Below, one piece after another: positions 1-51,732 of a stretch of DNA of 64,000 bases. Made by a program: the position numbers and the translations under genes. Each line of letters opens with the position of its first letter. Positions within the stretch are counted from its first letter, which is position 1. Location: NCBI GenBank assembly GCA_002269645.1, contig NIVC01000403.1:133076-197075 (forward strand). The letters run 5' to 3'. The notes under the pieces are model-generated. The model saw nothing but the letters and a program-made list of their open reading frames with translations, was not told where the DNA came from and did no database searches. The stretch comes from Macrostomum lignano (Eukaryota).

Positions 1-260
1 ATCTCTACTAGGTAGATAGGAAGCGAGATGAACAGGTAGCAGAAGATATTAGCGCACAGCGTGATCACTGTGCTGCTATTGTTCCTATAGAAGTGCAGCG
101 GCGGCAGGTACAGCATGAGGATGGCCATCCACATCTCCGAGTGGTTGATCAGATGACGCTTGTGCGGGCTGTGCGAAGCCAAGTTCCAGCTGCCCAGCAG
201 CTTCATAGCATTGTTATCCATTGCTTTCGTTCTATTGAGGATTTTCGTGTTTTGAATCTG
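1..260 (-). CDS. Probable coding exon of a membrane-protein gene, running off the left edge of the window
   Basis: The minus-strand frame is open from a candidate acceptor (tttgtcaaacag, ~261) or ATG at 221 to position 1: MDNNAMKLLGSWNLASHSPHKRHLINHSEMWMAILMLYLPPLHFYRNNSSTVITLCANIFCYLFISLPIYLVE. It has two hydrophobic segments. It is absent from the ORF track because no stop lies in the window. Family not recognised. Confidence 0.5.
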
Positions 261-3697: not shown

Positions 3698-6600
3698 TCA
3701 GATAGGCCTGCCCAGCAGTGTCACTGAGCTAGGCAGGCGCGAGTCGGTTGTATAGGACAGCTCAAGGAAGCCCAGCCGTTTATAGACCTCCGCGGTGGCG
3801 TCGCCGGCGGCCAAGCGGCAGTGCACGCCAGGACTGCCGTTGGTCTTCAGGGCGGCGAAGCAGCAGGCAAGGAGCCGCCGAAGCGCCAGCAGGTCCTGCT
3901 CGGTGCTAAATACACCAGGCAGAGCGTCCAGATGCACCACCGAGGGGAAGCGGGAGAGCACCTGATTGGGCAGGTTGCTGCCCGGCTCCGGCTGCTGCGA
4001 GTGAAAGTACTCGATGGCCTCCTGCGATTGCGGGGTGAAGGCTTGCTTGAATCTGCCCAATCCGCTGCTTGAATCTGCCCAATCCGCTGCTTGAATCTGC
4101 CCAATCCGCTGCTTGAATCCGCCCAATCCGCTGCTTGAATCTGCCCAATCCGCTGCTTGAATCTGCCCAATCCGCTGCTTGAATCTGCCCAATCCGCTAC
4201 TTGAATCTGCCCAATCCGCTGCTTGAATCTGCCCAATCCGCTGCTTGAATCTGCCCAATCCGCTACTTGAATCTGCCCAATCCGCTACTTGAATCTGCCC
4301 AATCCGCTGCTTGAATCTGCCCAATCCGCTGCTTGAATCTGCCCAATCCGCTACTTGAATCTGCCCAATCCGCTACTTGAATCTGCCCAATCCGCTGATT
4401 GAATCTGCCCAATCCGCTGCTTGAATCTGCCCAATCCGCTGCTTGAATCTGCCCAATCCGCTGCTTGAATCTGCCCAATCCGCTGCTTGAATCTGCCCAA
4501 TCCGCTAATTCAATCTACAAAACCGCTACTTGAATCTGCCCAATCCGCTACTTGAATCTGCCCAATCCGCTGCTTGAATCTGCCCAATCCGCTACTTGAA
4601 TCTGCCCAATCCGCTGCTTGAATCTGCCCAATCCGCTACTTGAATCTTCCCAATCCGCTAATTCAATCTAAAAAACCGCTACTTGAATCTGCCCAATCCG
4701 CTGCTTGAATCTGCCCAATCCGCTGCATGAATCTGCCCAATCCGCTAATTCAATCTACAAAACCGCTACTTGAATCTGCCCAATCCGCTACTTGAATCTG
4801 CCCAATCCCCTGCTTGAATCTGCCCAATCCGCTACTTGAATCTGCCCAATCTGCTGCTTGAATCTGCCCAATCCGCTACTTGAATCTGCCCAATCCGCTG
4901 CTTGAATCTGCCCAATCCGCTGCTTGAATCTGCCCAATCCGCTAATTTAATCTACAAAACCGCTACTTGAATCTGCCCAATCCGCTACTTGAATCTTCCC
5001 AATCTGCTGCTTGAATCTGCCCAATCCACTGATTGAATCTGCCTAATCCGCTACTTGAATCTGCCCAATCCGCTACTTGAATCTGCCCAATCCGCTACTT
5101 GAATCTTCCCAATCCGCTGCTTGAATCTGCCCAATCCGCTAATTCAATCTACAAAACCGCTACTTGAATCTGCCCAATCCGCTACTTGAATCTGCCCAAT
5201 CCGCTGCTTGAATCTGCCCAATCCGCTACTTGAATCTTCCCAATCCGCTGCTTGAATCTGCCCAATCCGCTAATTCAATCTACAAAACCGCTACTTGAAT
5301 CCGACCAATCCGCTACTTGAATCTGCCCAGTCCGCTAATTCAATCTACAAAACCGCTACTTGAATCTTCCCAATCCGCTAATTCAATCTACAAAACCGCT
5401 ACTTGAATCTGCCCAATCCGCTACTTGAATCGGCCCAATCCGCTAATTCAATCTACAAAACCGCTACTTGAATCTGCCCAATCCGCTAATTCAATCTAAA
5501 AAACCGCTACTTGAATCTGCCCAATCCGCTAATTCAATCTACAAAACCGCTACTTGAATCTGCCCAATCCGCTAATTCAATCTACAAAACCGCTACTTGA
5601 ATCTGCCCAATCCGCTAATTCAATCTAAAAAACCGCTACTTGAATCTGCCTAATCCGCTACTTGAATCGGCCCAATCCGCTAATTCAATCTACAAAACCG
5701 CTACTTGAATCTGCCTAATCCGCTACTTGAATCTGCCCAATCCGCTAATTCAATCTACAAAACCGCTACTTGAATCTGCCCAATCCGCTAATTCAATCTA
5801 CAAAACCGGTACTTAAATCTGCCCAATCCGCTAATTCAATCTACAAAACCGCTACTTGAATCGGCCCAATCCGCTAATTCAATCTGCAAAACCGCTACTT
5901 GAATCTGCCTAATCCGCTACTTGAATCTGCCTAATCCGCTACTTGAATCGGCCCAATCCGCTAATTCAATCTACAAAACCGCTACTTGAATCTGCCTAAT
6001 CCGCTACTTGAATCGGCCCAATCCGCTGCTTGAATCTGCCCAATCCGCTACTTGAATCTTCCCAATCCGCTGCTTGAATCTGCCCAATCCGCTAATTCAA
6101 TCTACAAAACCGCTACTTGAATCCGACCAATCCGCTACTTGAATCTGCCCTGTCCGCTAATTCAATCTACAAAACCGCTACTTGAATCTTCCCAATCCGC
6201 TAATTCAATCTACAAAACCGCTACTTGAATCTGCCCAATCCGCTACTTGAATCGGCCCAATCCGCTAATTCAATCTACAAAACCGCTACTTGAATCTGCC
6301 CAATCCGCTAATTCAATCTAAAAAACCGCTACTTGAATCTGCCCAATCCGCTAATTCAATCTACAAAACCGCTACTTGAATCTGCCCAATCCGCTAATTC
6401 AATCTACAAAACCGCTACTTGAATCTGCCCAATCCGCTAATTCAATCTAAAAAACCGCTACTTGAATCTGCCTAATCCGCTACTTGAATCGGCCCAATCC
6501 GCTAATTCAATCTACAAAACCGCTACTTGAATCTGCCTAATCCGCTACTTGAATCTGCCCAATCCGCTAATTCAATCTACAAAACCGCTACTTGAATCTG

Positions 6601-26344: not shown

Positions 26345-26738
26345 GGGATGATGTAGGATTGCCAGGGATGTTGCTAGGTGTCAGGAGTGTTGTTGGAATT
26401 TCAAGAGTGGTATTGGGATGTCAGGAGCGTTGTTGGGATGTCAGGAGCGTTGTTGGGATGTCAGGAGTGTTGTTGGGATTTCAAGAGTGGTATTGGGATG
26501 TCAGGAGCGTTGTTGGGATGTCAGGAGCGTTGTTGGGATGTCAGGAGCGTTGTTGGGATGTCAGGAGTGTTGTTGGGATTTCAAGAGTGGTATTGGGATG
26601 TCAGGAGCGTTGTTGGGATGTCAGGAGCGTTGTTGGGATGTCAGGAGCGTTGTTGGGATGTCAGGAGTGTTGTTGGGATTTCAAGAGTGGTATTTGGGAT
26701 GTCAGTAGTGTTGTTGGGATGTCAAGAGTGTTGTTGAG
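26345..26738. repeat. Minisatellite, 20-bp unit TTGTTGGGATGTCAGGAGCG with TTTCAAGAGTGGTATT variants
   Basis: Tandem copies just upstream of the SLC10 start. Confidence 0.93.
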
Positions 26739-27254
26739 GGGCTAAATCAGATCTTCCACCGTGGTTTCTTGGGGCCCTAAGTGGCAAGTTAAAACTGTGT
26801 ACTAATTAACTATTGACTTTGCTCTCAAAGCAACATAGCAGCATATCTCGTCAAGCACTGTTGGGTGAAAGGAATATAAGAGAAAGCCCACCAACCTTCA
26901 GCGTGTCTGTCAGTTTGCACTTTTGCGCAAGACATGAAGATTAGAAGTCAAACAGCTCGTGCGCTAGTTGCTAGGGCTTGCGTTGGAAGGGGGGCGAAAT
27001 GTTGCTGCCGCTGTGTGCGATCCACTGGGAGAAAATCGATATGGTTCGGTCTCATCTAAGACACCGGTTCGCCCAAGAGACTCCACTTAACCAGCACTTG
27101 ACATGGGGGGAAACGGTTGGACTTCTCTGTAGTTTTCTCTACTATATTCTTTTGATTCTTGCGGTTGCATTTGTACTTTTACGCTGAGAGGATTGAATTT
27201 GGGAGCTACGAGCTAATAGTACACAGTTGGTATATTTACGTGCCATGGCCAAGA

Positions 27255-27735
27255 CTGAGGGTAGGAAACCGGGACTGAGGGTAGGCAACCGGGACTGGGG
27301 GTCCGGGACTGAGGGTAGGCAACAGGGACTGGGGGTAGGGTGAGACAACCGGGACTGAAGGTAGGCAACAGGGACTGGGGGTAGGCAACCGGGACTGAGG
27401 GTAGGCAACAGGGACTGGGGGTAGGGTGAGACAACCGGGACTGAGGGTAGGCAACAGGGACTGGGGGTAGGGTGAGACAACCGGGACTGAGGGTAGGCAA
27501 CCGGGACTGAGGGTAGGCAACCGGGACTGAGGGTAGGCAACAGGGACTGAGGGTAGGCAACAGGGACTGAGGGTAGGCAACAGGGACTGAAGGTAGGCAA
27601 CAGGGACTGAGGGTAGGCAACCGGGACTGAGGGTAGGCAACAGGGACTGAGGGTAGGCAACAGGGACTGAGGGTAGGCAACCGGGACTGAGGGTAGGCAA
27701 CCGGGACTGAAGGTAGGCAACCGGAACTCGCGGTA
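27255..27735. repeat. Minisatellite, 20-bp unit GGGACTGAGGGTAGGCAAC(A/C)
   Basis: G-rich tandem copies. Confidence 0.95.
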
Positions 27736-28494
27736 GGCAACAGGGGCTGTGGATAGGCGAAGTTGACTTGGTGTCTGGGTGGACTAGTCAAGGCCTGTAG
27801 TGCTTGCAGGCTAAGGGTGCACGAGCGGCGATACAGGGATTATCTTTGCCTTTGCTTCACAAAGAACTGCACACGGAATGCTTTTGATTTTCTTAGATTT
27901 TTTGTCCGTCTCTTTTGCCGCCCAAGATCTTGCAGTGGAATTTCTATTATTTATTCAGACAGCGAAATCAGCCACGCAGACACACCCAATGCGTGTGTTT
28001 TCCCCCTAAAGGCAGCTCACTCACCGTAATGATGCTTGAGATAGCTGATTCCTCTGTCTGTAGCTGACGATTCTCTTCGCTTCGTTGAATTCAATTTCAT
28101 CTGCTTTCGCTGCTCAGCATTGCTAATCGCGTAAAGAATATTTGATACACTCAAGACAAGCCCGAAGCAGTTAGCAGCGTCAATACGGATTCAACGCTCG
28201 TCTGTTGTTTCTGCAACAAACTGAAAGCAGGGTAGAGCAAAAGCAGAGCCGAGCGGGAAAGAGATCTCACAGTTTTTTTATTGTGACCGCCCCGTCCTCA
28301 CAGCCAAGGATTGGCCAATGGGGAGGATCTCTTTAGGGCAGTGAGTCAACTCAACTTCTCTTGTTGTTACATTGCTCTGAAAGCGTGCGATTTTGGGACT
28401 CTCGCTAATGTTGAATTATAGGTTCTGAAGACGCAAAGGGTAATCTTGTCAAAAGCACCAACAACACCTACACCGACAACCTGTATGGATGGTC

Positions 28495-29272
28495 AGGCTG
28501 ATTCAGGATGGAAAGGATGCTCAGGCAGAGTGATTCAGGATGGAAAGGATGCTCAGGCAGAATGATTCAGGATGGTAAGGATGCTCAGGCAGAGTGATTC
28601 AGGATGGAAAGGATGCTCAGGCAGAATGATTCAGGATGGTAAGGATGCTCAGGCAGAGTGATTCAGGATGGAAAGGATGCTCAGGCAGAATGATTCAGGA
28701 TGGAAAGGATGCTCAGGCAGAGTGATTCAGGATGGAAAGGATGCTCAGGCAGAGTGATTCAGGATGGAAAGGATGCTCAGGCAGAGTGATTCAGGATGGA
28801 AAGGATGCTCAGGCAGAGTGATTCAGGATGGAAAGGATGCTCAGGCAGAATGATTCAGGATGGAAAGGATGCTCAGGCAGAGTGATTCAGGATGGAAAGG
28901 ATGCTCAGGCAGAATGATTCAGGATGAAAAGGATGCTCAGGTAGCATGATTCAGGACGGAAAGGATGCTCAGGCAGAATGATTCAGGATGGAAAGGATGC
29001 TCAGGCAGAGTGATTCAGGATGGAAAGGATGCTCAGGCAGAGTGATTCAGGATGGAAAGGATGCTCAGGCAGAGTGATTCAGGATGGAAAGGATGCTCAG
29101 GCAGAGTGATTCAGGATGGAAAGGATGCTCAGGCAGAGTGATTCAGGATGGAAAGGATGCTCAGGCAGAGTGATTCAGGATGGAAAGGATGCTCAGGCAG
29201 AATGATTCAGGATGGAAAGGATGCTCAGGCAGAGTGATTCAGGATGGAAAGGATGCTCAGGCAGAGTGATTC
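28495..29272. repeat. 32-bp satellite ATTCAGGATGGAAAGGATGCTCAGGCAGA(G/A)TG, left part
   Basis: Tandem copies interrupted at 29272 by the retrotransposon. The array resumes at 35020. Confidence 0.97.
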
Positions 29273-29377
29273 TTCTTGACTTAGCTGCAGGGTGGTCCGT
29301 AGACACAGCGGGGAGGCGAGGGTCGCCCATTCCGCTAGCCCCTGAAGGCCCGCAGACAGGCAGAGGCGTGGGGCCGG

Positions 29378-32300
29378 TCAGGGTGGTCCGCCGGTCCGTC
29401 CTGCAGCGTGATCTTCCGTTGGGAAGAAACTGGCTCGTCTAGTCGCCCGAAGGAACTGGATGAGCCGTGGGATGCTGTCGGGCTGGCAAACCTCGTCAAT
29501 GGACGGGTTCGGCCCGAGGTAGCTTAGCGGTCTCTGTTAAAGAAAGGGCAGTGACAGACAAAGTGTTGAGCATCTTCATTGTCGCACTCGCAAAAGGGGC
29601 AAATTTCGCTCTCGAGGTCGCCTCGGAGGAAGCAGTGCCTGGCGAGGTAGCCATGGCCGGTAAGGGTCATGACAAGGGCTCGAATATCCTTCCGATTCTG
29701 GTTCAGAAGGATGTTTCTGAGCCTGTGAGACGGGCAAGGAACCGCGGCACGAGATTGCCGGCAGTTTTGGGTGCCCGCCCATCTGTCCCTGTGGAGGGAG
29801 TCAGCCCAGTCGTCGATCTGACGATTGATGACTGTCAAGGGCATAGGGACCAGGGGGGCAGGGCCGAAGAAAGAGCCAGAGCCGCCCCTCTTGGCGAGGG
29901 TGTCTGCCAGCTCGTTCCCCGGAAACCCTGCGTGCCCTGGGATCCACTTCAGCCTGACAGTATTGCTTCTGGCCAGGAGGTTGAGCTGCCGGGCGCAGTC
30001 GGCGACTGTCCGGGAGTTCGTTGTGGTGTGGCAAAGGGCCTGTAAGGCCGCTTGGCTGTCGGAGTGGATGACAATAGTCTTTCCTCTCGTAACCTTGGCG
30101 TTCAGCTCTGCAGCGCAAGAGCTGATGGCAAGGACTTCGTTCTGGAAGACTGTGGAGAGTCTACCAGTGTGCTGGGCATGCGTGGCAATTACGCGGCCGT
30201 TGATGATGATGCAGACCCCAAAGCCGGCGCGACCGTCTTTGATGGATCCGTCCGTGTAGCAATGGACCTCCTGGAAATTCCAGTGGTCATTGGCAGCATC
30301 CCTAGAGGGGATGGTGACCTTGTAGCGCTGAAAGAGGTTGAGAGTGCGGGGTTCGCCGTCAGATAGGACGTGGAGCCCGCCGCTGTCTCTCAAGTCCTTG
30401 AGGCAGAGGTCAGCGTGGGGCAGAAGCTTGCGCTTAGCCATGGCCCTATGGGGCTGGATTCGAATGCCAGCGTCAGCTAGACGGCGGGCAGTCTTAGCCG
30501 CTTCCCTGCGGACAAAGATGTCCAGCGGAGGAATGTTGAGGAAGGCGTTGAGGCCATCGTAAGGAGCAGACGGAGGGGCGCTCATGATCATGCGACAAGC
30601 GCGCCCTTGCGCTCTCCTGAGAGCCTCTAGACAGGTCTTTATCTGCAGGGCGCTAGCCCAGATCAGGCCGCCATACGAGATAGCGGGCCTAACCATTGCA
30701 GTGTAGATCCACCAGAGGCGCTTGGGGGTGAGCCCCCAGGTGGTGCCGACAGCCCTGCGCAATTGCGCGAGGACTGCGAAGGCCTTTTTGGCTTTTGTTT
30801 GAACGTGGGGTGACCAGTTCAGCCTGTGGTCCAGGGTAATACCCAGACATTTAGTCTGCTTGCAGAAGGGGATTTCCCTTCCGTAAAGCATGAGCGGCCG
30901 AATCTGCCACTTGGTCCTGCTGGTGAACATGATCGCTGCGGTCTTAGTCTCAGAGAGCCTTAAACCACAGCGGTCCGCCCATTGCTCAGCAGCGTAGATG
31001 AAGTTCTGAAGAAGGTCCCTGAGGGTATCAGGGGACGGACCAGATGCCACCGCGGTGACATCGTCCGCATATCCAACTTTCAGAATGGGGTCAGGCCGAA
31101 CATCCCGGAGGAGCTCATCGATGACCATATTCCAGAGAACTGGAGACAGCACCCCACCTTGCGGGCTACCTTTGCAGACGGGGACCGTCCTCTGGTAGCC
31201 CAGCAGACTGGCGGTGGCCGTGCGATGGCTGATCATGTACATGATCCATCTGGTGAGATGTGAGTGCGTTTGCCTCTCACAAAGAGCTCTTCGGAACGCC
31301 TCAAAGAGGACGTTATCGAAGGCGCCAATGATGTCCAGGAAGATCCCCAGAGCAAAGCCATTACCAAGCACGGCCTTCTCGAGTTTATCGACCAGGACGT
31401 GCAGCGCGCTTTCAGTGGAGCGACCCGCCCGAAAAGCGTGCTGGTTCTCGCTGAGAGGTTTGTTCTTCAGCTCAACAGAGAGAAGGCGCCAAAGCACCAG
31501 TCTCTCCATCAGCTTGACCAGGGAGGAGGTCAAGCTGATCGGTCTGAAGGATTTGATAGAATGGTAGTCCGGGCGGCCTGGCTTAGGGATAAAGATCACC
31601 TTTGCCTCGGTCCATGCCTGCGGGACATAACCAAGCGTGATGCATGCCCGAAGAAGGCTGCAAAGTTTGCGCAGGAAGCCTGGGCATTTAACCGCCTCTC
31701 TTAGAAGGGCCGGTACAATGCCGTCGGGTCCTGGGGCTTTGAAAGGCTTGAAGGAATTTGCCGCTCTCACAATGCGGTCCTCCGTGATGATAGAGGCAGC
31801 CAGCGCGTGACCTCCCTCCGAGTGATCCGGAGTGGTCTGGTTAGCTGGCTCGTTGGGGAAAAACGCAGTGAGCATTACATCAAGCGTTTCCCCTGGGTTG
31901 TCCGTGGACGTACCGTCGGTGCGTTTGACCGAGGAGAGCTTAGACATTTTGTCCAGCGTGAGCGCTTTCACAACTCTGGAGGTGGGGCGTGAGCCCTCTA
32001 GCTCCTCACAGTATTGTCGCCATTTTTGAGCCTTTGCATTCCTAACCTGCCTTTTAAACTCATGAATTGCGTCATGATAGGCGGTTTGGTCTGCAGGGCT
32101 CTTAGTTTTAGTTGCTCTGCGGTGGAGTCTCTTAGCCCTGCGACGGAGGTTGCCGAGCTCGGGATTCCACCACGGCGCCGATTTTTTCCCTTTATAGGCT
32201 TTTAAAGGGCAGGACGCCTCAAAGGCGGCGGTTAGCGTCTCTGTCAAAACAGTCGCGCACTCATCCGCCTCTCGGCACGACGTGATCGTGGATGGTTGGC

Positions 32301-33086
32301 CAGGAGACCGATGGAATTCCTTCAGGGCGAGCCCGAAGGTTTCCCAATCCGTATTTCTGGCGTTCCGTCTCCACGTAACACGAGTTGCGCTACGCGCGGC
32401 CATTAGGTTGAAGGAGATGAACTTGTGATCCGAGAGTGAGGACACTGGAAGCACCCGCCACGCCCAATACTCTGGTAGAGTCTGGGCGTTGCGAGCGTAG
32501 CGTCGATCACCTCCGACCACCGTCCGTTGTCAAAGGTAGGGGTGGACCCAGAGTTGCAGAACTCGAGGGTCGTAGAGGCAACGTAGGCTAGGAGGTCTTC
32601 GCCTCTCTGATTAATGCCAGTGCTGCCCCAGTGAGTGTGGTGGGCGTTGATGTCGCCGGCAACCATGAGCTCGTAGTTTTTGGCAGAGCAGAGCTCTACC
32701 AGCGTAGCGAGGGCTCTGGGGACGACCGCAGCATCGCCTGGTAGGTAAACCGAGGCAATGAGGGTGGTCTTCCCAGGAAGAAGGTCCTCGGATTGGATGA
32801 CGCAGATGTCCCTGTTGGACAGGTCCGATCTGAGCCACGCACTGAGCGTTTTGCTCGCAAAGATGCAAGCTCTGGGAGGCTGGTTGGCCTCGCGAGGGTA
32901 AGTATAAAAACAATTGTAGCCAGCAGGGGCGTTTTGAGGCTTACCTCTGAGAGTCCAGGGTTCCTGGACGAGGATGAGCCCCGGCTTGTCGAGCTCGGCG
33001 TAACGCATAAGGTTGACCGAGGCTGCGACGCAGTGCTGCAGATTAATCTGCAGGCAATGGATTCCCTGGTTGCTGATCATTATCAC
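29378..33086 (-). CDS. Retrotransposon ORF2: AP endonuclease, reverse transcriptase, RNase H, CCHC knuckle (two 1-nt frameshifts)
   Basis: APE motifs LQINLQH, VQEPW, GDINAHHTHWGS and SDHK; RT YADD; RNase H YTDGS, IHSDSQAAL and WIPGHAGFPGNELAD; CPFC...HFVCHC. Frameshifts lie at ~32464 and ~29525. After the second, the frame continues YLGPNPSIDEVC...LIQFLRATRR to TGA at 29378, homologous to the C-terminus of the second element. Confidence 0.92.
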
Positions 33087-33177
33087 GCAGTTGGGGAATC
33101 GTTGAGCAGGTCATCCTCCTCCTTTTCAGTGGTGGGTGACCCGCAGACCTCCATGGGAGTTTCAGCGTCCTCAGCAG

Positions 33178-34547
33178 TTAGGGTGGCTGTGGAGTCCTCC
33201 GCGGACGTGAGCCCAGCGTGGACGTTGCCGTCGCCTCCCTGCGTGCTTCGGTGCTGTCACTGCCCGTCCCCTCTGCCTCGTCGGTCAGGTCGATGCGGGT
33301 GGCGCCAGCCTCCTGGTGAGTCACAGACTCGAACCAGTCGGTCGGAGCCTCCCCGCTTAGAGTCTGGCCTTCTGGCTGTTGGGGTGGAGCGCGAGAAGCG
33401 CGGGCCCGCTCACGATGCGCACGAAGGTTCTTGGCCTGGTCCAGCGCGCGCTGGATCAGGCCGGACCTCCGGGTGCTCCTGGCGGGTCTGCGATTGCGAT
33501 TTCCGGTTTCAGCAGCGCGAACTGCTTTACCGGGCATAGGATCGGCCGTTTGCCTCGGCTTCTTTGCCGGAGGAGCCTGGGCCCCAGTTCCGGTTTCGGA
33601 AGCTTTGGCATTCTTGGCTTCATCAGCTTTCCGCTCCTCGCAACGGAGGATGGTCAGCTGAGTCAGACCAATATGAATTGTGGACTTAGGCGGCAAGCGC
33701 TTAGCCCAGTCATCAGAGAGCCCTAGGATCACCGTAGCCCCCTTCTCCTTGCGGGAAGTGGCGTGGTGTAGGAGCCCGTTGACCTCAAGGTCGGGGTGCA
33801 GCTTAAGCAATATTTGCCTAAGCTGATCTCCGGACTTAATGGCACTGCCGGCCGGGATCCAGACGCGAAAGCGCTGGGTCTTCTGTCGTTCGCCCTCGCT
33901 GGCGAAGACGAGCTTGCCGAGCTTCTTGGGCCAGTTCAGCTTTGGCAGAAGCTCGCGTAGATTGCTTCTGCTCTCCTCCGAGCTGCACCAGATGAAGATG
34001 CAGCCGTCGGTCTTGGCAGACTTGACCACGCTCACAGGGCGGCCCGCCAGGAGCTGGTCGATGAGCGCAGCATCGATGGTGCGCCAGGCACTGTCGAGCT
34101 CGTCGGCCGTGAGGTCCTGCTCTTCCCCGAAGACGATGACCGCCGGTTGGAGCTTGACCTTTGAGGCGTAGTTGGTGGCGGCGGTTCCCGAAGGCCCGGC
34201 CGCGCTTGTAGCAGGTATACTGGGTGGCTCACCAGCGGGGGTTGTATCCTGGGGGGCAGGGGTTGCTGTGGTTCCTTTCGGCCCAACAGCAGCCTCGCCC
34301 TCCCTAGGTTCCCCTCCGCCGGTGGCCGGCCCGCAGTACCCCGTAGTCGCCGTCGCCGCTCGTTGCGGCGTTGGTTGCGGGTGCGTCGGGCTTCAGCGGA
34401 GGGCCCGGTCGCGCGTGCGGGCATGTCACCGGCCGAGCCGGCGGCAAGCCCATCTGCCCCCGGTGGGGCGGCGCTGGTGCCAGAGTCACCGGCCGGAGTT
34501 GCCGGGGCCCCGGCTTCAGCGGGGGTTAAAGAGGCGGATGACGCCAT
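33178..34547 (-). CDS. Retrotransposon ORF1 (low-complexity N-terminus, DUF4780-like C-terminal domain), one 1-nt frameshift
   Basis: ATG at 34547 (MASSASLTPAE...RRTRNQRRNERRRRLR) joins, via one missing G at 34311-34314, the frame GEPREGE...AVIVFGEEQDLT...RFRVWIP...KLHPDL ending TAA at 33178. No CCHC knuckle was seen. The DUF4780 likeness is pattern recognition only. Confidence 0.78.
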
Positions 34548-34773
34548 AGCTAAAAAGCGGGAAGGAGTGAGCTGAGTCACAAAAGAAAGAGGAAAGAAGA
34601 AAAAGAAAAGGACCGCTAGCGACCGGACAACCCCCCGGCCTTCCAGCCCATCGGCACGGTCAAACACCTTAGGCATTAGGGGGTACGTTAAGCAGTACCA
34701 CGGCCTGCAGGCTGGCAAGCCAGACCCGCATACCCAAATTCGGCCGAAGCCACTGGATGGGTCGCCAGCGTCG

Positions 34774-35019
34774 GAGCCCAGTCTGTCCAGCAGCCCTAGG
34801 GTCTGCCTTGAACACACGCGGGGACGAGTACCCTGGGTCGACTTGTGAAACAGCGTGAGGGGGGGGTCTGCGGCTGCCAGCGCCAAATAGCGGGTGCAGA
34901 CCTCCCTCTCCAGCCTTGACCTGCTGAAGATAGGGGCAGGCGTGAAGCATCGCAGACCGTAGCCCATAGGCCTGGTCTGTCTCATACTTCACTGGCGTGC
35001 TGAATACACCTTCGCGTGC
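34774..35019 (-). ncRNA. HDV-like self-cleaving ribozyme (predicted) at the retrotransposon 5' end
   Basis: P1 GCACGCG (35019-35013) / CGCGUGU (34820-34814); P2 GACCCA / UGGG(C)UC; P3 GGG/CCC; L3 UACUCGU; P1.1 A-U plus C-G; P4 hairpin; J4/2 CAGA(C) with the candidate catalytic C at 34785. G1 is the first base after the TSD. Activity is untested. Confidence 0.8.
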
Positions 35020-35735
35020 GGCAGAGTGATTCAGGATGGAAAGGATGCTCAGGCAGAATGATTCAGGATGGAAAGGATGCTCAGGCAGAATGATTCAGGA
35101 TGGAAAGGATGCTCAGGCAGAATGATTCAGGATGGAAAGGATGCTCAGGCAGAATGATTCAGGATGGAAAGGATGCTCAGGCAGAATGATTCAGGATGGA
35201 AAGGATGCTCAGGCAGAATGATTCAGGATGGAAAGGATGCTCAGGCAGAATGATTCAGGATGGAAAGGATGCTCAGGCAGAATGATTCAGGATGGAAAGG
35301 ATGCTCAGGCAGAATGATTCAGGATGGAAAGGATGCTCAGGCAGAATGATTCAGGATGGAAAGGATGCTCAGGCAGAATGATTCAGGATGGAAAGGATGC
35401 TCAGGCAGAATGATTCAGGATGGAAAGGATGCTCAGGCAGAATGATTCAGGATGGAAAGGATGCTCAGGTAGCATGATTCAGGATGGAAAGGATGCTCAG
35501 GCAGAGTGATTCAGGATGGAAAGGATGCTCAGGCAGAGTGATTCAGGATGGAAAGGATGCTCAGGCAGAATGATTCAGGATGGAAAGGATGCTCAGGCAG
35601 AGTGATTCAGGATGGAAAGGATGCTCAGGTAGCATGATTCAGGATGGAAAGGATGCTCAGGCAGAATGATTCAGGATGGAAAGGATGCTCAGGTAGCATG
35701 ATTCAAGATGAAAAAGATGTTTAGACAGCATGATT
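35020..35735. repeat. 32-bp satellite, right part (continuation of 28495-29272)
   Basis: Same unit, mostly the gcagaatg variant, decaying at the distal end. Confidence 0.97.
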
Positions 35736-36594
35736 TAGGACCGAAAGTGCAACTGGAACAAGCAGTTATATTTAAGGTCATCAGTTGCACATTGTGCGAA
35801 AATGACCGACAGAGCAAATAGATAGGGAGAGTAGCGTCGACAATCCATCAACTTTCAACCAGCAATTTTATCGATTAAATATCCTATATCTGATGACTAA
35901 GGTAAAAGTACATTTCGTCCTTCATCAACTTCATCCTGTGCGTGATATGAAGCTTATAAAAAATTTCTAGAAGTCACTCTGAAAAGAAACCTACATTCTT
36001 AAAATCGAAGCGATATTGGTCACGATTTTGACTTCTACTCCACACCACCCCGTACTACGTAGTTCTGTGCTAACTAGCTAAATCACAATTCTAGTGGAAC
36101 ATATTGTGTGTGTGCAGAGTTCCTGTTAAAAGGCCCGGTAAAAGTATATATCTTAAGTGACCCCGCTTTATCACGTCAGGCAATGGAGTACAGCCGTGAA
36201 TTCACTGGAATGCCAGGCTTTTATTTATACCTATAGAAGCTTATGGCTAGAGTGTAATCTTAGCTTGGCTTTTGAGTTACGACTACTGGGGGATTTACAG
36301 ATCTTGAAATTTCTTCCAAGACTGGCCAAAGAGCCCCGCCGCTTCGGTTGCCAGCCGGGGCAAGCAAACGCAAATTATTGATCGAATTCTGACGCCAGTG
36401 CTGCCGCGTTCAACAAATCTACTGAGCGCTGTCTACTGTGTTCCATTGCGTCTGCTTTAGCGGCTTAGATTTGCCTTTCTTACTACTTGCTTGGGTAGTT
36501 ACGTATGTATTGTGAATTTTCGTCATTTTGTCAATTTTCGTCAATTCGTCCTTTTCGATAACTCACTGCAGAACGTTTATGGTAACCCGATACC

Positions 36595-37945
36595 TTAGTG
36601 CCTCAGTGCCTCAGTACCTCAGTGCCTCAGTGCCTCAGTGCTTCAGTGCTTCAGTGCCTCAGTACCTCAGTGCCTCAGTGCTTCAGTGCTTCAGTGCTTC
36701 AGTGCCTCAGTGCCTCAGTGCCTCAGTACCTCAGTGCTTCAGTGCCTTAGTGCCTCAGTGCCTCAGTGCCTCAGTGCCTCAGTGCCTCAGTGCCTCAGTG
36801 CCTCAGTGCCTCAATGCCTCAGTGCCTCAGTGCCTCTGTGCCTCTGGGCCTCAGTGCCTCAGTGCCTCAGTGCCTTAGTGCCTCAGTGCCTTAGTGCCTC
36901 AGTGCCTCAGTGCCTCAGTGCCTCAGTGCCTCAGTGCCTCAGTGCCTCAGTGCCTCAGTGCCTCAGTGCCTTAGTGCCTCAGTGCCTCTGTGCCTCAGTG
37001 CCTCAGTGCCTCAGTGCCACAGTGCCTCAGTGCCTCAGTGCCTCAGTGCCTCAGTGCCTTAGTGCCTCAGTGCCTCAGTGCCTCAGTGCTTCAGTGCTTC
37101 AGTGCTTCAGTGCCTCAGTGCCTCAGTGCCTCAGTACCTCAGTGCCTCAGTGCCTCAGTGCCTCAGTACCTCAGTGCCTCAGTGCCTTAGTGCCTCAGTG
37201 CCTCAGTGCCCCAGTGCCTCAGTGCCTCAGTGCCTCAGTGCCTTAGTGCTTAGTGCCTCAGTGCTTCAGTGCTTCAGTGCTTCAGTGCCTCAGTGCCTCA
37301 GTGCCTCAGTGCTTCAGTGCCTCAGTGCCTCAGTGCCTCAGTGCCTTAGTGCCTCAGTGCTTCAGTGCCTCAGTGCCTCAGTGCCTCAGTGCCTCAGTGC
37401 CTCAGTGCCTTAGTGCCTCAGTGCCTCAGTGCCTCGGTGCCTCAGTGCCTCAGTGCCTCAGTGCCTCAGTGCCTTAGTGCCTCAGTGCCTCAGTGCCTCA
37501 GTGCTTCAGTGCTTCAGTGCTTCAGTGCCTCAGTGCCTCAGTGCCTCAGTACCTCAGTGCCTCAGTACCTCAGTGCCTCAGTGCCTCAGTGCCTCAGTGC
37601 CTTAGTGCCTCAGTGCCTCAGTGCCTCAGTGCCTCGGTGCCTCAGTGCCTCAGTGCCTCAGTGCCTCAGTGCCTCAGTGCCTCAGTGCCTCAGTGCCTCA
37701 GTGCCTCAGTGCTTCAGTGCCTCAGTGCCTCAGTGCCTCAGTGCCTCAGTGCCTCAGTGCCTCAGTGCTTCAGTGCCTCAGTGCCTCAGTGCCTCAGTGC
37801 CTCAGTGCCTCAGTGCCTTAGTGCCTCAGTGCCTCAGTGCCTCAGTGCCTCGGTGCCTCAGTGCCTCAGTGCCTCAGTGCCTCAGTGCCTCAGTGCCTCA
37901 GTGCCTCAGTGCCTCAGTGCCTCAGTGCCTCTGTGCCTCAGTGCC
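36595..37945. repeat. 8-bp tandem repeat (GCCTCAGT)n
   Basis: A ~1.35-kb array. It explains the SVPQCLSA ORFs. Confidence 0.98.
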
Positions 37946-38529
37946 TGCATGTACGAGCATCCGCCTTGGTCTCTGTCCTGCCTTTCTGCTTTCATTGGTC
38001 TCAAAGTTCTGTTGAAGTGTTGTCAGCTGAAAAAATTAACAAAATATGCCTAATAGAGCATTCATTGCATTCAGAATTATATCACAATTGAAGTTTCGAG
38101 TTACAGATTAAACGCATCCCTCAGCTGCTCTGAAGTCTTAGACGGAGCAATTCAGCTTTATTTGCCGAAATGAGAGACTCACAGATTAACAAAGCTGAGC
38201 ATGGCAATGTCAATATCTAAATTTCCTCTTCCATAGATCCTTGGATTTGTTAATCGCGTTTAAACTGAGTTATGAAACTGCTTAGCCATTTTGGGTAACT
38301 TAATACACAACTGGGTATTGTAGCAGATATTGGGGTAAATCTTTTGAATGGCTTTTCAGGCGGAAATCTGCGACTGTTTAAACAGCAATAATCGATATTT
38401 TAATAAGTTGATAAAATTCGGTGTCAAAATGGTGTTTTAGTGTCAGTGTCTTTAAAGATTTAAGCAATACAGTTTCTTTGCATATTAAAACGTTAATTTT
38501 TTGAGAGATGCGATTTTCTGCGAAGTAAC

Positions 38530-39442: not shown

Positions 39443-42400
39443 CGCGGAGGCGGTGGCGGATGCTGCACAAAAAAGCGACTGATTGGCGGCAGTTGCATCG
39501 ATGCGGTCGCGGCAGCGGCGGCAGCGGCAGCCGCTTGCATCACCATGGAAACTGCTGGAGCACCCACCGCTTGCTGAGCAGGCTGAGAACTTGTAGTTAC
39601 ATCAGCAGCACCGCCAGCACCAGCTGATGAACGAGTAGATCTTTCCGGAATATGGCGTCGACGTCCAGCCGTTTTGTTTCCATCGGCGCTGCCGTCACAG
39701 TCGCCTCCTCGGTGCCCGAATCGTCTGGTGTGCAGGTGCAAATTGTGCACAAACTTGGTGGTGAAGCCGCAGTCGTGGCATCGGTGCGCCCGATTGGCCG
39801 AATGGCTGCGCAGGTGCGAGTTCAGCATGGAACGGTTGATGCAGACGTAGTCGCAGTTCGGGCACTTGTACGGCCTCGAGCCCGAGTGATTGGCGGCGTG
39901 ATATTTCATGTGGTGCTTGTACTCGGTGACGAACGGGCACTGCGAGCAGCGCAGCACCCTGTCTGGTCTCATGTGCTGCACCCGGTGCCGCCAGAACTCC
40001 TCCTGAAGATGAAGGTGCGAGTGTTGGACTGGGTGAGGACTGGGACTGGCGCTGAGTGAGGGCTGGGACTGGCACTGAACGGACACTGGGAAGGCTGAGA
40101 CTGGCACTGAACGGACACTGTGAGGGCTGAGACTGGCACTGAACGGACATTGGAAAGGCTGGGACTGGCACTGAACGGACATTGGGAGGGCTGGGACTGG
40201 CACTGAACGGACACTGTGAGGGCTGAGACTGGCACTGAACGGACATTGGGAAGGCTGGGACTGGCACTGAACGGACATTGGGAAGGCTGGGACTGGCACT
40301 GAACGGACACTGGGAAGGCTGGGACTGGCACTGAACGGACACTGGGAAGGCTGGGACTGGCACTGAACGGACACTGGGAGGGCTTTGACTGGCACTGAAC
40401 GGACATTGAGAATGCTGAGACTGGCACTGAACGGATACTGGGAAGGCTGAGACTGGCACTGAACGGACATTGGGAAGGCTGGGACTGGCACTGAACGGAC
40501 ACTGTGAGGGCTTTGACTGGCACTGAACGGACACTGTGAGGGCTTTGACTGGCACTGAACGGACATTGTGCCCACTAGCTAAAGTATCGATTTCGTCAAT
40601 TCTTTTAATATTTATTCCGTAAAAATTGCCGAAACAATTTTCAGCATTTCCAGATAATGGTTGCTACTCTTCAAGCAAATAAAAGATTTTTATGAATAAA
40701 AAATTGGCCCAAAAAGCAGCAATTGTATTTGGTACACAATGGCCTGCTACTTGTTGCTGTGCATGCAAAAGGAAAGGCAATATTGAAGTGTTTGCCTCAG
40801 AGATATGAGGGGACAATCAGTGAATAATTTCCATCTCATCTCAGTATCTTTGGGAAGTCTGTTTGCTGCCTGCCTCTTTAGCAGACCCGAGGGGGGGGGG
40901 GGGGTTGGCCGGTTGGGTCAGAAAAAATTGCCAATCAAACAAACTGATTTATGATTGACAATAGCCTCTGGATAAAACACGATGCCAGCTCACAACTCGC
41001 AACACCTTACCATTTTTTCTCTCACCTTATTTTTATTCCCAGCTTACCAGCGTGGGTAAACACAACAGGGATTCTTGTGAGGCACTCTACCATCCTACCA
41101 AACAATCCAAAATCTAAGAATCCACTTCTGCGCATAGCGCCGCGCCCTCCAAATCCCCTTCATCGTGGGCGCCATTTGCCCGCAATGCATTCTTTCCTGC
41201 GTATATATATATATTTAGATTACATTCTGCAGCCACTGCTCTGGGAATCGGGCAGCTGGACTTGCCAAAATTTTGAGCATTAATATTTTTTCAACAACTG
41301 AACGAAGGAGGGGATGAGGAGGAGAAGCTGAGGGTGAGAGAGGCGGAGCGACTCGCTAGGGGCGGGGCAATTTGCAGTTTTTACAGCTTAGGGATAAAAA
41401 TGTTTTGTTAGGCGCCACTTTTTGCCTCATACTGGACTTTTTTATTCCCTTTTTCCCTATCAGTGGTGGTCGCCTGGATAGAAAGAGCTACTGCTGTTTG
41501 TTGCTGCTGGCTTACCGAGCCGCATCTGGGGATTCGAGTTCAGGACCACCAAGGAGACGGGGGCACCCACCTAGGAGACAGGGGGCACCCACCTAGGAGA
41601 CAGGGGGCACCCACCTAGGAGACAGGGGGCACCCACCTAGGAGACAGGGGGCACCCACCTAGGAGGCAGGGGACGCCCACCTAGGAGACAGGGGGCACAC
41701 ACCTAGGAGACAGGGGACACCCACCTAGGAGACAGGGGGCACCCACCTAGGAACCAGGAGGAACACACCTAGGATACAGGGGGCACCCACCTAGGAGGCA
41801 GGAGCACCCACCTAGGAAACAGAGGGCACCTACCTAGAAGAACAGGGGCACCCACCTAGGGAGCCCCCCTAGGAGGCAGGGGTCGCCCACTTAGGAGACA
41901 GGAGGCTCCCACATAGGAGGCAGGGGTCGCCCACCTAGGAACCAGGAGGAACACACCTAGGAGACAGGAGGCACCCACCTAGGAGGCAGGGGACGCCCAC
42001 CTAGGAGACAGGGGGCACCCACCTAGGAGACAGGGGACGCCCACCTAGGAGACAGGGGGCACACACCTAGGAGACAGGGGACGCCCACCTAGGAGACAGA
42101 GGGCACCCACCTAGGAACCAGGAGGAACACACCTAGGAGACATGAGGCTCCCACCTAGGAGACATGAGGCTCCCACCTAGGAGACAGGAGGCACCCACCT
42201 AGGAGACAGGAGGCACCCACCTAGGAGACATGAGGCTCCCACCTAGGAGACATGAGGCTCCCACCTAGGAGACAGGAGGCACCCACCTAGGAGACATGAG
42301 GCTCCCACCTAGGAGACATGAGGCTCCCACCTAGGAGACAGGAGGCACCCACCTAGGAGACATGAGACTCCCACCTAGGAGACAGGAGGCACCCACCTAG

Positions 42401-42860
42401 GAGACATGAGGCTCCCACCTAGGAGACATGAGGCACCCACCTAGGAGACAGGAGGCACCCACGTAGGAGACATGAGGCACCCACCTAGGAGACAGGAGGC
42501 TCCCACCTAGGAGACAGGAGGCACCCACCTAGGAGACAGGGGGCACCCACCTAGGAGACAGGAGGCACCCACCTAGGAGACCGGAGGCACCCACCTAGGA
42601 GACATGAGGCTCCCACCTAGGAGACAGGAGGCACCCACCTAGAAGACAGTGATGTTGAATTAATGGTCTTGGCTTAAACCCTATTTTAAATAAAGCTTTG
42701 TCTTTTGGGTATTTGATCGCAGGGTGTGAAAAGCAACAGAAAACAACTCAAGATCATCTCACCTTGCTTGGCAGTATCACGCTGCAGATTTTGCACTTTA
42801 ACTGACCGCTACCGCTGCCGCCTCCAGCGCCACTGCCGCCCTCGCCGCCATGGCAACTAT
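39151..42860 (-). CDS. hb: Hunchback-like C2H2 zinc finger transcription factor (4 central plus 2 C-terminal fingers); 5' exon(s) not located
   Basis: Exon 42860-42763 (…QLKCKICSVILPSK) splices in phase 0 to exon 40002-39151 (EEFWRHRVQHMRPDRVLRCSQCPFVTEYKHH, CINRSMLNSH, C-terminal CRHCGIVF...HLGYH and FRCNGCG...HLYRDAH). These match the Hunchback signature fingers. Confidence 0.88.
40025..40570. repeat. Minisatellite, 32-bp unit ACTGGCACTGAACGGACACTGGGAAGGCTGAG
   Basis: Intronic array starting ~25 bp from the hb acceptor. It produces the false N-terminus of ORF 39151..40575. Confidence 0.95.
41560..42645. repeat. Minisatellite, 22-bp unit GGGGGCACCCACCTAGGAGACA
   Basis: Tandem copies in the hb intron, shifting to a catgaggctc variant distally. 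Confidence 0.95.
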
Positions 42861-49695: not shown

Positions 49696-51732
49696 ACTTA
49701 CTTACTACTAACTTACTACTGACGGGGGGCGCAGGCGCCGCGAATAGGCCGCGAGGCCCCTATCGCAACCCCAAGGTAAAAGAGCACAAGGATTAGCCTT
49801 GGGGGTGCGCCCAGTCCCCGCCAGTAGTCGGCAGGTCCGCAGTGGAGGCATCGGCGACCCTCATCCGGCCGGAGTCCCGGACGAAGGCGCGGAGGTCTCG
49901 GATATTGTCCGCGGTGGTCAGCTCGTCCATCCGCTGGGGGTGGCCGAGGTATTTGTGCCGCGCCTTGTTGAAGTAAGGGCAGAAGGTGACGTGATGCTCC
50001 GCGGTCTCCTCTCCTATGCCACAGAAGGGACAGGTGGGAGGGCAACCGGTTTGCAACGATATATGTCTCTGGAAGAATCCGTGGCCGGTTAGGACCATGC
50101 ACATCTCCCTGAGGTCGGTTCTGTTAAGCGAAATCAGATAATCAGAGACTTTCCTGTTCAGGTTAGGCATGGCAGAGCGGCTCTGCCTGTACTCGGTGCA
50201 GCTGTTCCAGTGGAGCTGGTGCTGCTGATGGAGCCACCTGTTGATATGGCGGGTGACTTGCGACCTGGGGGTGGGTAGCCTCATCAGACGGTGGTTGCCG
50301 TCTGGGTTGCTGCCCTCCTTGGCGAGAGAGTCCGCGAGCTCGTTGCCCAGGATGTTGCTGTGACCAGGTGTCCAGATAATTCTAATCCTGTTAAGGACTG
50401 AGAGAGATTGCACACTGCGGTGGCATTGAGATACTGTAGCAGCGGAGATATTCTCAGTGGTTAAGGCCTTAATAGCAGCTTGGCTATCAGTGTAGAAATT
50501 AATGTCAAAATTATTAATGTTCGCCTGAAACAGTTGCTGGGCACACTGCTCAATGGCGCAAATTTCAGCTTGGAAAACTGAGGTGTTCTCACCGAGGTGC
50601 AGACTTTCCTGGAGAAGCATCTTACCCTCGTGGAAAATGGCAATACCCGCTCCAGCGCGGCCGTTGAACAGCGAGCCGTCGGTGAAGCAGTGAATGCCCT
50701 GGCTGCGCCGGTTCACACCGACATCCAGCGGAATGTTGTCTCGGCCAGGGATGGCGGTCTTGAAGCCCCTCCTGATGTTGAGGGCGGGAGGTCGACTATC
50801 CACATTGCCCAGGTCCATGTGGATGTTGTTAAGGTCGCGGCGGACAAAGTCCATATGCGGGATTAATGTTTTCATTGGCATAAAGCCAGAGGGCGCGTTA
50901 TTTAACGTTTTATCTCTGATAAGCCGGGAGGCAGACTTCATAGCCTCCGCCCTAATAAATAGGTGAAGCGGAGGTAGGTTAAGGATAGTGTTCAGCCCCT
51001 CGTAAGGGGTGGACGGGTACGCACCTGTGATGGCACGGCAAATGCTGCCCTGAAGCTGGTACAGCCGCTGACGGGCGGCCTTCTGCTCCAGCACGCTAGT
51101 CCAGATGAGACTCGCGTATGTGATACTGGGCCGGATGATGCCGGTATAAATCCAACGGACCGTTCTAGGCGAGAGGCCCCAAGTCGGCCCGATGGCTCTG
51201 CGCAGCTGGGCAAAGCAGCGTTTTGCCCGACCGATGACGTTATCAAGGTGCTTCGTCCAGCGCAGGTCATGCGTTAGCGTCACACCGAGGTATTTGACCT
51301 CCTTCTTGAAGGGGATGTTTCTGCCATAGACAGTGAGGTTTTTCATCTCCCACTTACGGCGCTTGGTGAAAACGACAGCGACAGTCTTAGTGACGCTGAT
51401 TTTTAGGCCATGCTGTGTAGCCCAGTCGGCCGCCTTGTCGGCGAATTGCTGCATCAGGTTGCGCAGAGTGGCGGGGTCGGGTCCGCTGACGACCGCGGCA
51501 ACGTCATCGGCGTAGCCCGCCCTGGTGATACTGCTGGGAATGTCAGCGGTTAGAAGTTCGTCCATGACGAGATTCCAGAGAAGTGGAGTTAGCACGCCAC
51601 CTTGCGGGCCGCCTTTCATCACCGCCCGGGTGAGGGTAACGCCCATAAGTGTGGATGTCACAAACCTTTTGCGGATCATAAAATAAATCCAGCGAACAAT
51701 GCTGTGTCTTACATTCCTGCGGGAAAGAGAAA
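49696..51732 (-). mobile_element. 5'-truncated LOA-like non-LTR retrotransposon, second family (RT C-half, RNase H, CCHC knuckle)
   Basis: 14-bp TSD GTCTCGGCACAGTT at 49682-49695 and 51733-51746, with an AGT/TAAG repeat 3' tail. The frame is uninterrupted to TAA at 49793, with [44 protein letters not shown] and CPFC...HHVTFC. The first ~46 aa of the listed 692-aa ORF are flanking DNA. Confidence 0.93.

Follow-up and report, generated by a model that had tools for sequence, protein, structure and literature searches.

HDV-like ribozymes are known from the 5' ends of several retrotransposons, including R2, R4, Dong, Baggins, L1Tc and RTE, and an IRES-like role has been proposed for them (PMC3774820, PMC6765202). 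The sequence-only reading of the present locus had placed it beside the ribozymes of R2, RTE, L1Tc and Baggins, and the literature agrees that these lie at the 5' ends of their elements. Here we analyze a candidate of the same kind, located at the start of a retrotransposon within a 64-kb stretch of Macrostomum lignano DNA (hereafter, the window). In our view, the first 250 nucleotides of the retrotransposon RNA (35019-34770 on the minus strand) are likely to fold into a large self-cleaving ribozyme of the HDV-like family. The non-site-specific APE LINE L1Tc of Trypanosoma cruzi begins with its ribozyme, L1Tc/Pr77, as is predicted for our element; this ribozyme cuts L1Tc out of co-transcripts and, with a minimal length of 77 nt, doubles as an internal promoter (PMC3185411). 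R2, known from Drosophila, silkmoths and the planarian Schmidtea, also carries a 5' HDV-like ribozyme on a non-LTR element, and shares with our locus the possibility of a very long J1/2, a conserved P1.1/P3/L3 core and a covarying P1 (PMC3774820). Unlike our element, R2 is specific to 28S rDNA, encodes a restriction-like endonuclease in a single ORF and is often cut upstream in the 28S sequence (PMC3774820), whereas the element in the window has APE and RNase H domains, two ORFs, an insertion site in satellite DNA and a predicted cut exactly at the junction. Baggins1, a LOA element of Drosophila (Ruminski et al. 2011, cited in PMC3774820 and PMC6765202), is, going by its description in the citing papers, an APE-RT-RNase H LINE like ours with cleavage at the element 5' end, the position predicted here; ORF2 of our element, however, is only ~35% identical to the named insect relatives, annotated Lian-Aa1 (LOA).

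Two further systems are close in structure. The drz-Agam-2 ribozyme of Anopheles gambiae (Webb et al. 2016, PMC4908430) has the double-pseudoknot core and the retrotransposon association in common with our locus. It combines a P1.2 helix in J1/2 with an extended P2, leaving linkers of 5 and 2 nt (PMC4908430) against 3-4 and 2 nt here. The two differ in that the locus shows no detectable sequence similarity to drz-Agam-2 and no match to the Rfam drz-agam models, its J1/2 comprises several hairpins over ~170 nt where drz-Agam-2 has a single P1.2 helix, and its host is a flatworm. In the CPEB3 and drz-Spur ribozymes of mammals and sea urchin, L3 and J1/4 are nearly identical to those seen here: the drz-Spur alignment has UUCACGU and GU, against UUCUCGU and GU in one relative of our element (L001, below) and UACUCGU and GU in the window, and the 3-bp P3 and the initial C of J4/2 are common to all. 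Unlike the window copy, these ribozymes are compact, with a J1/2 of a few nucleotides, and have a U.U mismatch in P1.1 where the window has an A-U pair. 5'-terminal HDV-like ribozymes in LINEs are thus an already known device, and there are precedents for both a large J1/2 and a weak or variant P1.1. The term 'new variant', which the sequence-only reading had used, is too strong, since the family already includes long structured J1/2 domains combined with an extended P2 (PMC4908430, PMC3774820) as well as weak or altered P1.1 pairs. We found no published report of a ribozyme in Macrostomum, and the flatworm precedents we found are limited to an R2 ribozyme predicted in Schmidtea (PMC3774820) and to variants of twister carried by LINEs of Schistosoma (PMC8501958).

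The host element is a non-LTR retrotransposon of 5,747 bp (~5.75 kb) on the minus strand, full-length but decayed (Table 1). Its ORF2 matches the Pfam domains Exo_endo_phos_2 (APE), RVT_1 (RT) and RNase_H and ends C-terminally in a Cys/His motif. ORF1 opens with an ATG at 34547, and the predicted ribozyme lies upstream of it on the sense strand. By tblastn against intact proteins of relatives, ORF1 has one frameshift and one in-frame stop, and ORF2 has two frameshifts. The window copy is therefore a relic with broken ORFs, and its ribozyme may still cleave or may have been inactivated by substitutions. The best named matches of ORF2 are chimeric Macrostomum lignano models, one of them 99% identical over 18% of the query, followed here by the insect proteins annotated 'Lian-aa1' at ~35% identity. 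ORF2 has the APE, RT and RNase H domain order of the LOA clade, and by this order and the 'Lian-aa1' matches the element is probably LOA-like. The window holds a single copy of the retrotransposon. A short fragment at 51552-51616, with 82% identity to part of its ORF2, is probably the remnant of a related retrotransposon.

The insertion interrupts a 32-bp satellite, arrays of which flank the element at 28499-29272 and 35020-35747, and is bordered by a target-site duplication of 11-13 bp with the sequence (GA)ATCACTCTGCC. With boundaries marked by slashes, the 5' junction reads ...GAATCACTCTGCC/GCACGCG... and the 3' junction ...AAGAAGA/ATCACTCTGCC/TGAGC.... Taking out the element together with one copy of the duplication returns the satellite to its register. 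The duplication and the restored register identify the first base of the element unambiguously as G35019, which bears out the earlier placement of G1 at the duplication boundary: 35020 is the last base of the duplication and 35019 the first of P1. The surrounding region is dense in tandem repeats, with 20-bp arrays at 26379-26736 and 27253-27758, a 1.35-kb (CCTCAGTG)n array at 36593-37946 and an array of ~22-bp repeats at ~41680-42610.

Table 1. Features of the retrotransposon, its 5'-terminal HDV-like fold and P1-like strands close to P2. Positions are window coordinates except where a relative is named; element nucleotide n corresponds to window coordinate 35020-n on the minus strand.
Feature	Position	Element nt	Strand	Basis or remark
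Retrotransposon	29273-35019		-	Pfam domains, ORFs, tblastn against relatives
Target-site duplication, 5' copy	35032/35030-35020		-	last flank base C35020
Target-site duplication, 3' copy	29272/29270-29260		-	junction sequence
P1, 5' strand GCACGCG	35013-35019	1-7	-	7 bp with 34820-34814, G1-U wobble
J1/2 peripheral domain (P1.2-like), 170 nt	34843-35012		-	folding
J1/2 closing helix	35009-35007 and 35002-34999 with 34854-34851 and 34847-34845	11-21/166-175	-	3+4 bp
J1/2 hairpin A	34992-34942	28-78	-	conserved
J1/2 hairpin B	~34941-34919		-	folding
J1/2 hairpin C	~34910-34857		-	folding
P2, 5' strand	34834-34842		-	outer GUCG 34842-34839, unpaired A34838, inner CCCA 34837-34834
P3 GGG/CCC	34833-34831 with 34823-34821	187-189 with 197-199	-	invariant in three sequences
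L3 UACUCGU	34830-34824	190-196	-	TYYHCG*Y except A at position 2
P1, 3' strand CGCGUGU	34814-34820	200-206	-	pairs with 35019-35013
J1/4 GU (3' strand of P1.1)	34812-34813	207-208	-	G34813-C34828, U34812-A34829
P4 hairpin	34786-34811	209-234	-	sequence and fold
J4/2 CAGAC	34781-34785	235-239	-	C34785 (C235) and A34782 of CNRA
P2, 3' strand	34770-34780		-	inner UGGG 34780-34777, loop CUC 34776-34774, outer CGAC 34773-34770
Proximal strand CACGC	34857-34853		-	complement of P1'
Proximal strand CCUGCG	L002 151-156			complement of own P1'
Proximal strand GCUCGC	L001 76-81			complement of own P1'

The sequence that begins right after the target-site duplication can adopt the nested double pseudoknot P1/P1.1/P2/P3/P4. 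All pairings listed in the sequence-only reading (P1, P2, P3, P4 and three helices within J1/2) are present on the minus strand, and its central claim, an HDV-like double pseudoknot with P1 formed from the first nucleotide of the element, agrees with the descriptor, the fixed nucleotides, the covariation and the energetics described below. The extent of P2 needs correction. P2 had been drawn as GACCCA 34839-34834 (nt 181-186) paired with UGGG(C)UC 34780-34774 (nt 240-246); the inner pairing holds. Homology with relatives resolves P2 into an inner and an outer helix with a 1x3 internal loop between them, and the outer helix GUCG/CGAC moves the end of the structure from 34774 to 34770. P1.1 consists of a C-G and an A-U pair, the latter formed by A34829 of L3 with U34812 (U208). 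By its position in J4/2, C34785 is the candidate catalytic cytosine, and the predicted cleavage site lies 5' of G35019, exactly at the first base of the element.

We compared the locus with the descriptor of the Lupták laboratory, which combines a P1 of the form GNNNNN*:NNNNNY, a P2 of 6-7 bp with one insertion allowed, a P3 of three Watson-Crick pairs, an L3 of the form TYYHCG*Y, a J1/4 of RN, P4 and a J4/2 of CNRA*; the descriptor paper defines the HDV-like family with six conserved nucleotides. An initial generic core scan was dropped as too loose, returning ~355 anchor sites and missing the candidate through the bulge in P2. With the descriptor relaxed to admit J1/2 lengths to 200 nt, a single mismatch in L3 and a loosely defined P4, a search of the window on its two strands (128 kb in all) finds exactly one locus, whose P1 begins at 35019 and whose J4/2 C is 34785. 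The nested order P1-J1/2-P2-P3-L3-P3'-P1'-J1/4-P4-J4/2-P2' is present in the window copy, as are all six fixed nucleotides of the family (G35019, U34830, C34826, G34825, C34785 and A34782). The sole departure of L3 from the 7-8 nt consensus is the A in place of a pyrimidine at position 2. At 170-173 nt, J1/2 of the window copy exceeds the 50 nt allowed by the search descriptor; this bound is a convenience of the search and no limit of the family, as ribozymes with J1/2 of 216-498 nt do cleave (PMC3774820).

A descriptor match alone is weak evidence, since ~17% of shuffled windows give one: block-wise dinucleotide shuffles yield 0.22 full matches and 1.35 cores per window. The expectation for a core on the sense strand within the first 300 nt of the element is ~0.003, and a P1 with 7/7 pairs at the fixed position defined by the duplication has P ~2.7e-3. 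The MFE z-score of the region is unremarkable (-0.8). No Rfam model of the HDV type (HDV_ribozyme, CPEB3, drz-agam and others) matches at the gathering score across the whole window, or at E<=10 in a stretch of 801 nt and in the 81-nt core. These models are specific to sequence families and accommodate neither pseudoknots nor a 170-nt insertion, so that their failure counts against membership in those particular families and not against the fold. The Rfam searches returned only noise: mir-1228, Guanidine-II and a weak CsrB match on the 32-bp satellite, the last being spurious and derived from the CAGGATG motif.

Two relatives of the element, L001 and L002, are informative for the 5' region, giving a small covariation sample of three sequences. 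L002 is a Logan contig (run ERR14788467) with an ORF2 63% identical to that of the window. It starts at the nucleotide homologous to nt 1, with its first 40 bases aligning gap-free to 35019-34980, and extends ~530 nt (5964-6492) beyond the 3' end of the element. Such ends fit a 5'-processed RNA with 3' read-through, and could also come from an assembly break. L001 is a JGI metagenome contig with an ORF1 74% identical to that of the window; it begins ~85 nt upstream of P2 and hence lacks the terminal P1 strand. In L002, P1 is GCCUGC/GCAGGC against GCACGCG/CGCGUGU in the window, amounting to two double compensatory changes and a G-U to G-C change, and all six pairs form at contig nt 1 (P ~2.8e-3). 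In both sequences that reach the 5' end, the window and L002, G1 is paired to a pyrimidine at nt 1. Both relatives fit TYYHCG*Y in L3, L001 with UUCUCGU and L002 with UCUCCGU; their J1/4 is GU and AG, respectively. The P1.1 of L002 consists of U-A and C-G, with both pairs changed on both sides relative to the window, in keeping with the compensatory character earlier ascribed to the A-U and C-G pairs; L001 has C-G and a U.U mismatch. In P2, the relatives have GCCG/CGGC where the outer helix of the window reads GUCG/CGAC, a U-A pair of the window corresponding to C-G; the inner helix also covaries, with CCCA/UGGG in the window, CCCAAA/UUUGGG in L001 and CUCAGA/UCUGAG in L002. The position of P4 holds a hairpin of different sequence in each relative.

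Among the fixed nucleotides, the relatives keep G1 (in L002), the U, C and G of L3 and the C of J4/2, the last located four to five bases before P2'. The purine-A of CNRA is missing from both, the corresponding sequences being CGUG(U) at ~143-147 in L001 and CUGC at 228-231 in L002. Either the CNRA requirement is relaxed in this lineage, or these copies are weak. In an alignment of the window, L001 and L002 with J1/2 removed, 96.4% of cells are paired and seven pairs are double-changed, two of them in P1 and two in P1.1. Only 1/500 shuffles reaches the observed pairing and number of double changes, and control alignments with the 3' partners slid by one to three columns are 31-49% paired with 0-1 double changes. 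Three sequences are few, but each helix that varies carries the signal consistently.

Other searches for relatives contributed little to the alignment. Exact look-ups of the window ORFs found nothing, a protein search and a profile search with ORF1 recovered P0001 only, and an ORF1 profile scan of metagenome contigs gave no match. Two further loci, L003 and L064, are without a 5' UTR. A degenerate DNA pattern of the core hit 27 metagenome, 31 genome and 0 viral loci, all of which we take as chance, given their short low-identity blastn matches to reference elements and GC-rich, bacterial-like flanks. The 5' regions of four more distant LOA-like relatives with 35-45% ORF2 identity (L004, L005, L065 and L066) contain no descriptor match; a minus-strand match in L004 overlaps the end of ORF2 in antisense orientation and has the look of a chance hit. 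The contig of L005 (39% ORF2 identity) begins with GUGGGCCCGUC (1-11), which pairs perfectly with GACGGGCCCAC (151-161) located 150 nt downstream, with no adjoining HDV-like core.

The long J1/2 is itself structured. Three helices within it are perfect: 34992-34984 with 34950-34942 (nt 28-36 with 70-78), 34979-34974 with 34958-34953 (nt 41-46 with 62-67) and 34902-34896 with 34871-34865 (nt 118-124 with 149-155). Hairpin A displays three double changes relative to L002. The closing helix is weak in the window and absent from the constrained MFE structure; its counterpart in L002 has 9 bp (11-19 with 154-162) and compensatory changes relative to the window. Between the closing helix and P1 there remain 3-4 nt, and between it and P2 there remain 2 nt. 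Experiments have shown that large HDV-like ribozymes are activated when a P1.2 helix and an extended P2 'pinch' P1 and P2 together (PMC4908430), and the linkers left by the closing helix, together with the extended P2, would produce the same arrangement here. In silkmoth R2 ribozymes, the J1/2 loops of 216-498 nt are in part required for activity (PMC3774820). We estimated the energy of the pseudoknotted fold by forcing P1 and P3, keeping the P2 strands free and summing the nested part with the P2 duplex. The sum is ~-104 kcal/mol in the window, where the unconstrained MFE is -100.7; in L002 it is -135.8 and the MFE -132.1. The pseudoknotted fold is thus competitive with the MFE structure.

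Drawing on the established behavior of the family (PMC3774820, PMC6765202), we propose the following course of events. The element would be transcribed within a longer host or read-through transcript, in which the ribozyme would fold, with the closing helix of J1/2 holding the distant P1 strand beside the extended P2. C34785 in J4/2 would serve as the general acid/base, the RNA would cut itself 5' of G35019, and cleavage would release the element RNA, its exact first nucleotide bearing a 5'-OH. A cut at this position would provide full-length copies whichever promoter was used. The folded 5' UTR may also aid translation of ORF1 on uncapped RNA, as proposed for R2 and L1Tc, among others. If the ribozyme cleaves, a LINE family of the APE/RNase H type from free-living flatworms joins the known bearers of 5'-terminal HDV-like ribozymes, and the origin of precise full-length element RNAs from read-through transcripts would be explained. 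The locus would also offer a natural large ribozyme with a multi-hairpin J1/2 and an A-U/C-G P1.1, in which activation of the HDV core by a peripheral domain could be studied. The current picture of ribozyme or retrotransposon biology is unchanged by it.

Other readings of the same observations have to be weighed. A GC-rich 5' UTR might meet a loose descriptor by chance, the P1 match at nt 1 being a coincidence; the 0.22 full matches per shuffled window, the frequent occurrence of duplexes of at least 5 bp to P1' in shuffled upstream sequence and the z-score of only -0.8 all agree with this. We disfavor chance as a very improbable explanation: a core in the 5'-most 300 nt coinciding with a complete P1 at nt 1 is hardly to be expected, the arrangement recurs in L002 with compensatory changes, and the seven double compensatory pairs stand against slid controls that collapse. 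A real structure, on the other hand, need not be a catalytic one, as covariation speaks for structure and not for catalysis. A conserved pseudoknotted 5' UTR could resemble the HDV fold without self-cleavage and serve in binding the element's own proteins, in IRES-like translation or in RNA stability, with an internal promoter starting transcription at nt 1. Internal promoters are frequent in LINEs of the I, LOA and jockey types. The R2 protein, moreover, also binds the region of the R2 ribozyme (PMC6765202), and both the missing A-minor 'RA' of J4/2 in L001 and L002 and the lack of a match to the Rfam HDV families point in the same direction. We nevertheless judge a non-cleaving structure unlikely, because the window has the exact HDV topology with every fixed nucleotide in place, the C at the catalytic position is conserved in 3/3 sequences, and in the window and L002, which extend to the 5' end, nt 1 itself is a G paired to Y, whereas a structure without a role in cleavage has no reason to pair its first nucleotide.

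A different question is which strand pairs with P1'. In 3/3 sequences, a complement of the sequence's own P1', of 5-6 Watson-Crick bp, is found no more than 45 nt upstream of P2, and its sequence differs between the elements. These proximal strands have shuffle P values of 0.15 (window), 0.08 (L002) and 0.07 (L001), with a combined Fisher P of 0.03 in a post hoc test. They could be the relics of an older compact ribozyme left after a 5' extension, alternative pairing partners, or noise. In the 5'-extension model of Eickbush, old P1 strands stay behind in J1/2 (PMC3774820), which agrees with a real ribozyme that uses, or also uses, the proximal strand at 34857-34853, forming a compact structure that cuts inside the 5' UTR, with the terminal strand as a later 5' extension or an alternative partner. 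We find this arrangement extremely doubtful: no individual P value falls below 0.07 and the test is post hoc, the L001 strand is not at a position homologous to those of the window and L002, the proximal strands of the window and L002 lack the initial G and are shorter than the terminal P1, and a cut there would remove 160 nt that new copies nonetheless keep. Quite unlikely, too, is a combined scenario for this flatworm lineage, in which the A-minor adenosines of J4/2, missing from both relatives, have become dispensable or been replaced and P1' chooses between the terminal and the proximal strand. Should P1' switch partners, the outcome would be either a switch between conformations or cleavage at a second, internal site, governed by the 170-nt J1/2. 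Further P1-like strands occur in the window copy at 35000-34995 and 34944-34940. A ribozyme that pairs P1' with the terminal strand and cuts at the first base of the element is the reading we prefer.

Two more features of the 5' UTR were observed. An AUG in hairpin A of J1/2, at 34985-34983 (nt 35-37), opens a frame of 317 codons that runs through the ribozyme into the N-terminal frame of ORF1. The GUAUGAGA motif is conserved in L002, where the called ORF1 starts only at 548, and we suspect that its conservation is structural rather than coding. Downstream of the ribozyme, at 34769-34740 (nt 251-280), lie two conserved hairpins, GCUGG...CCAGU and GGC-UUCG-GCC, the second with a UUCG-type loop. 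They are common to L001 and partly to L002, and may represent a further structured domain of the 5' UTR.
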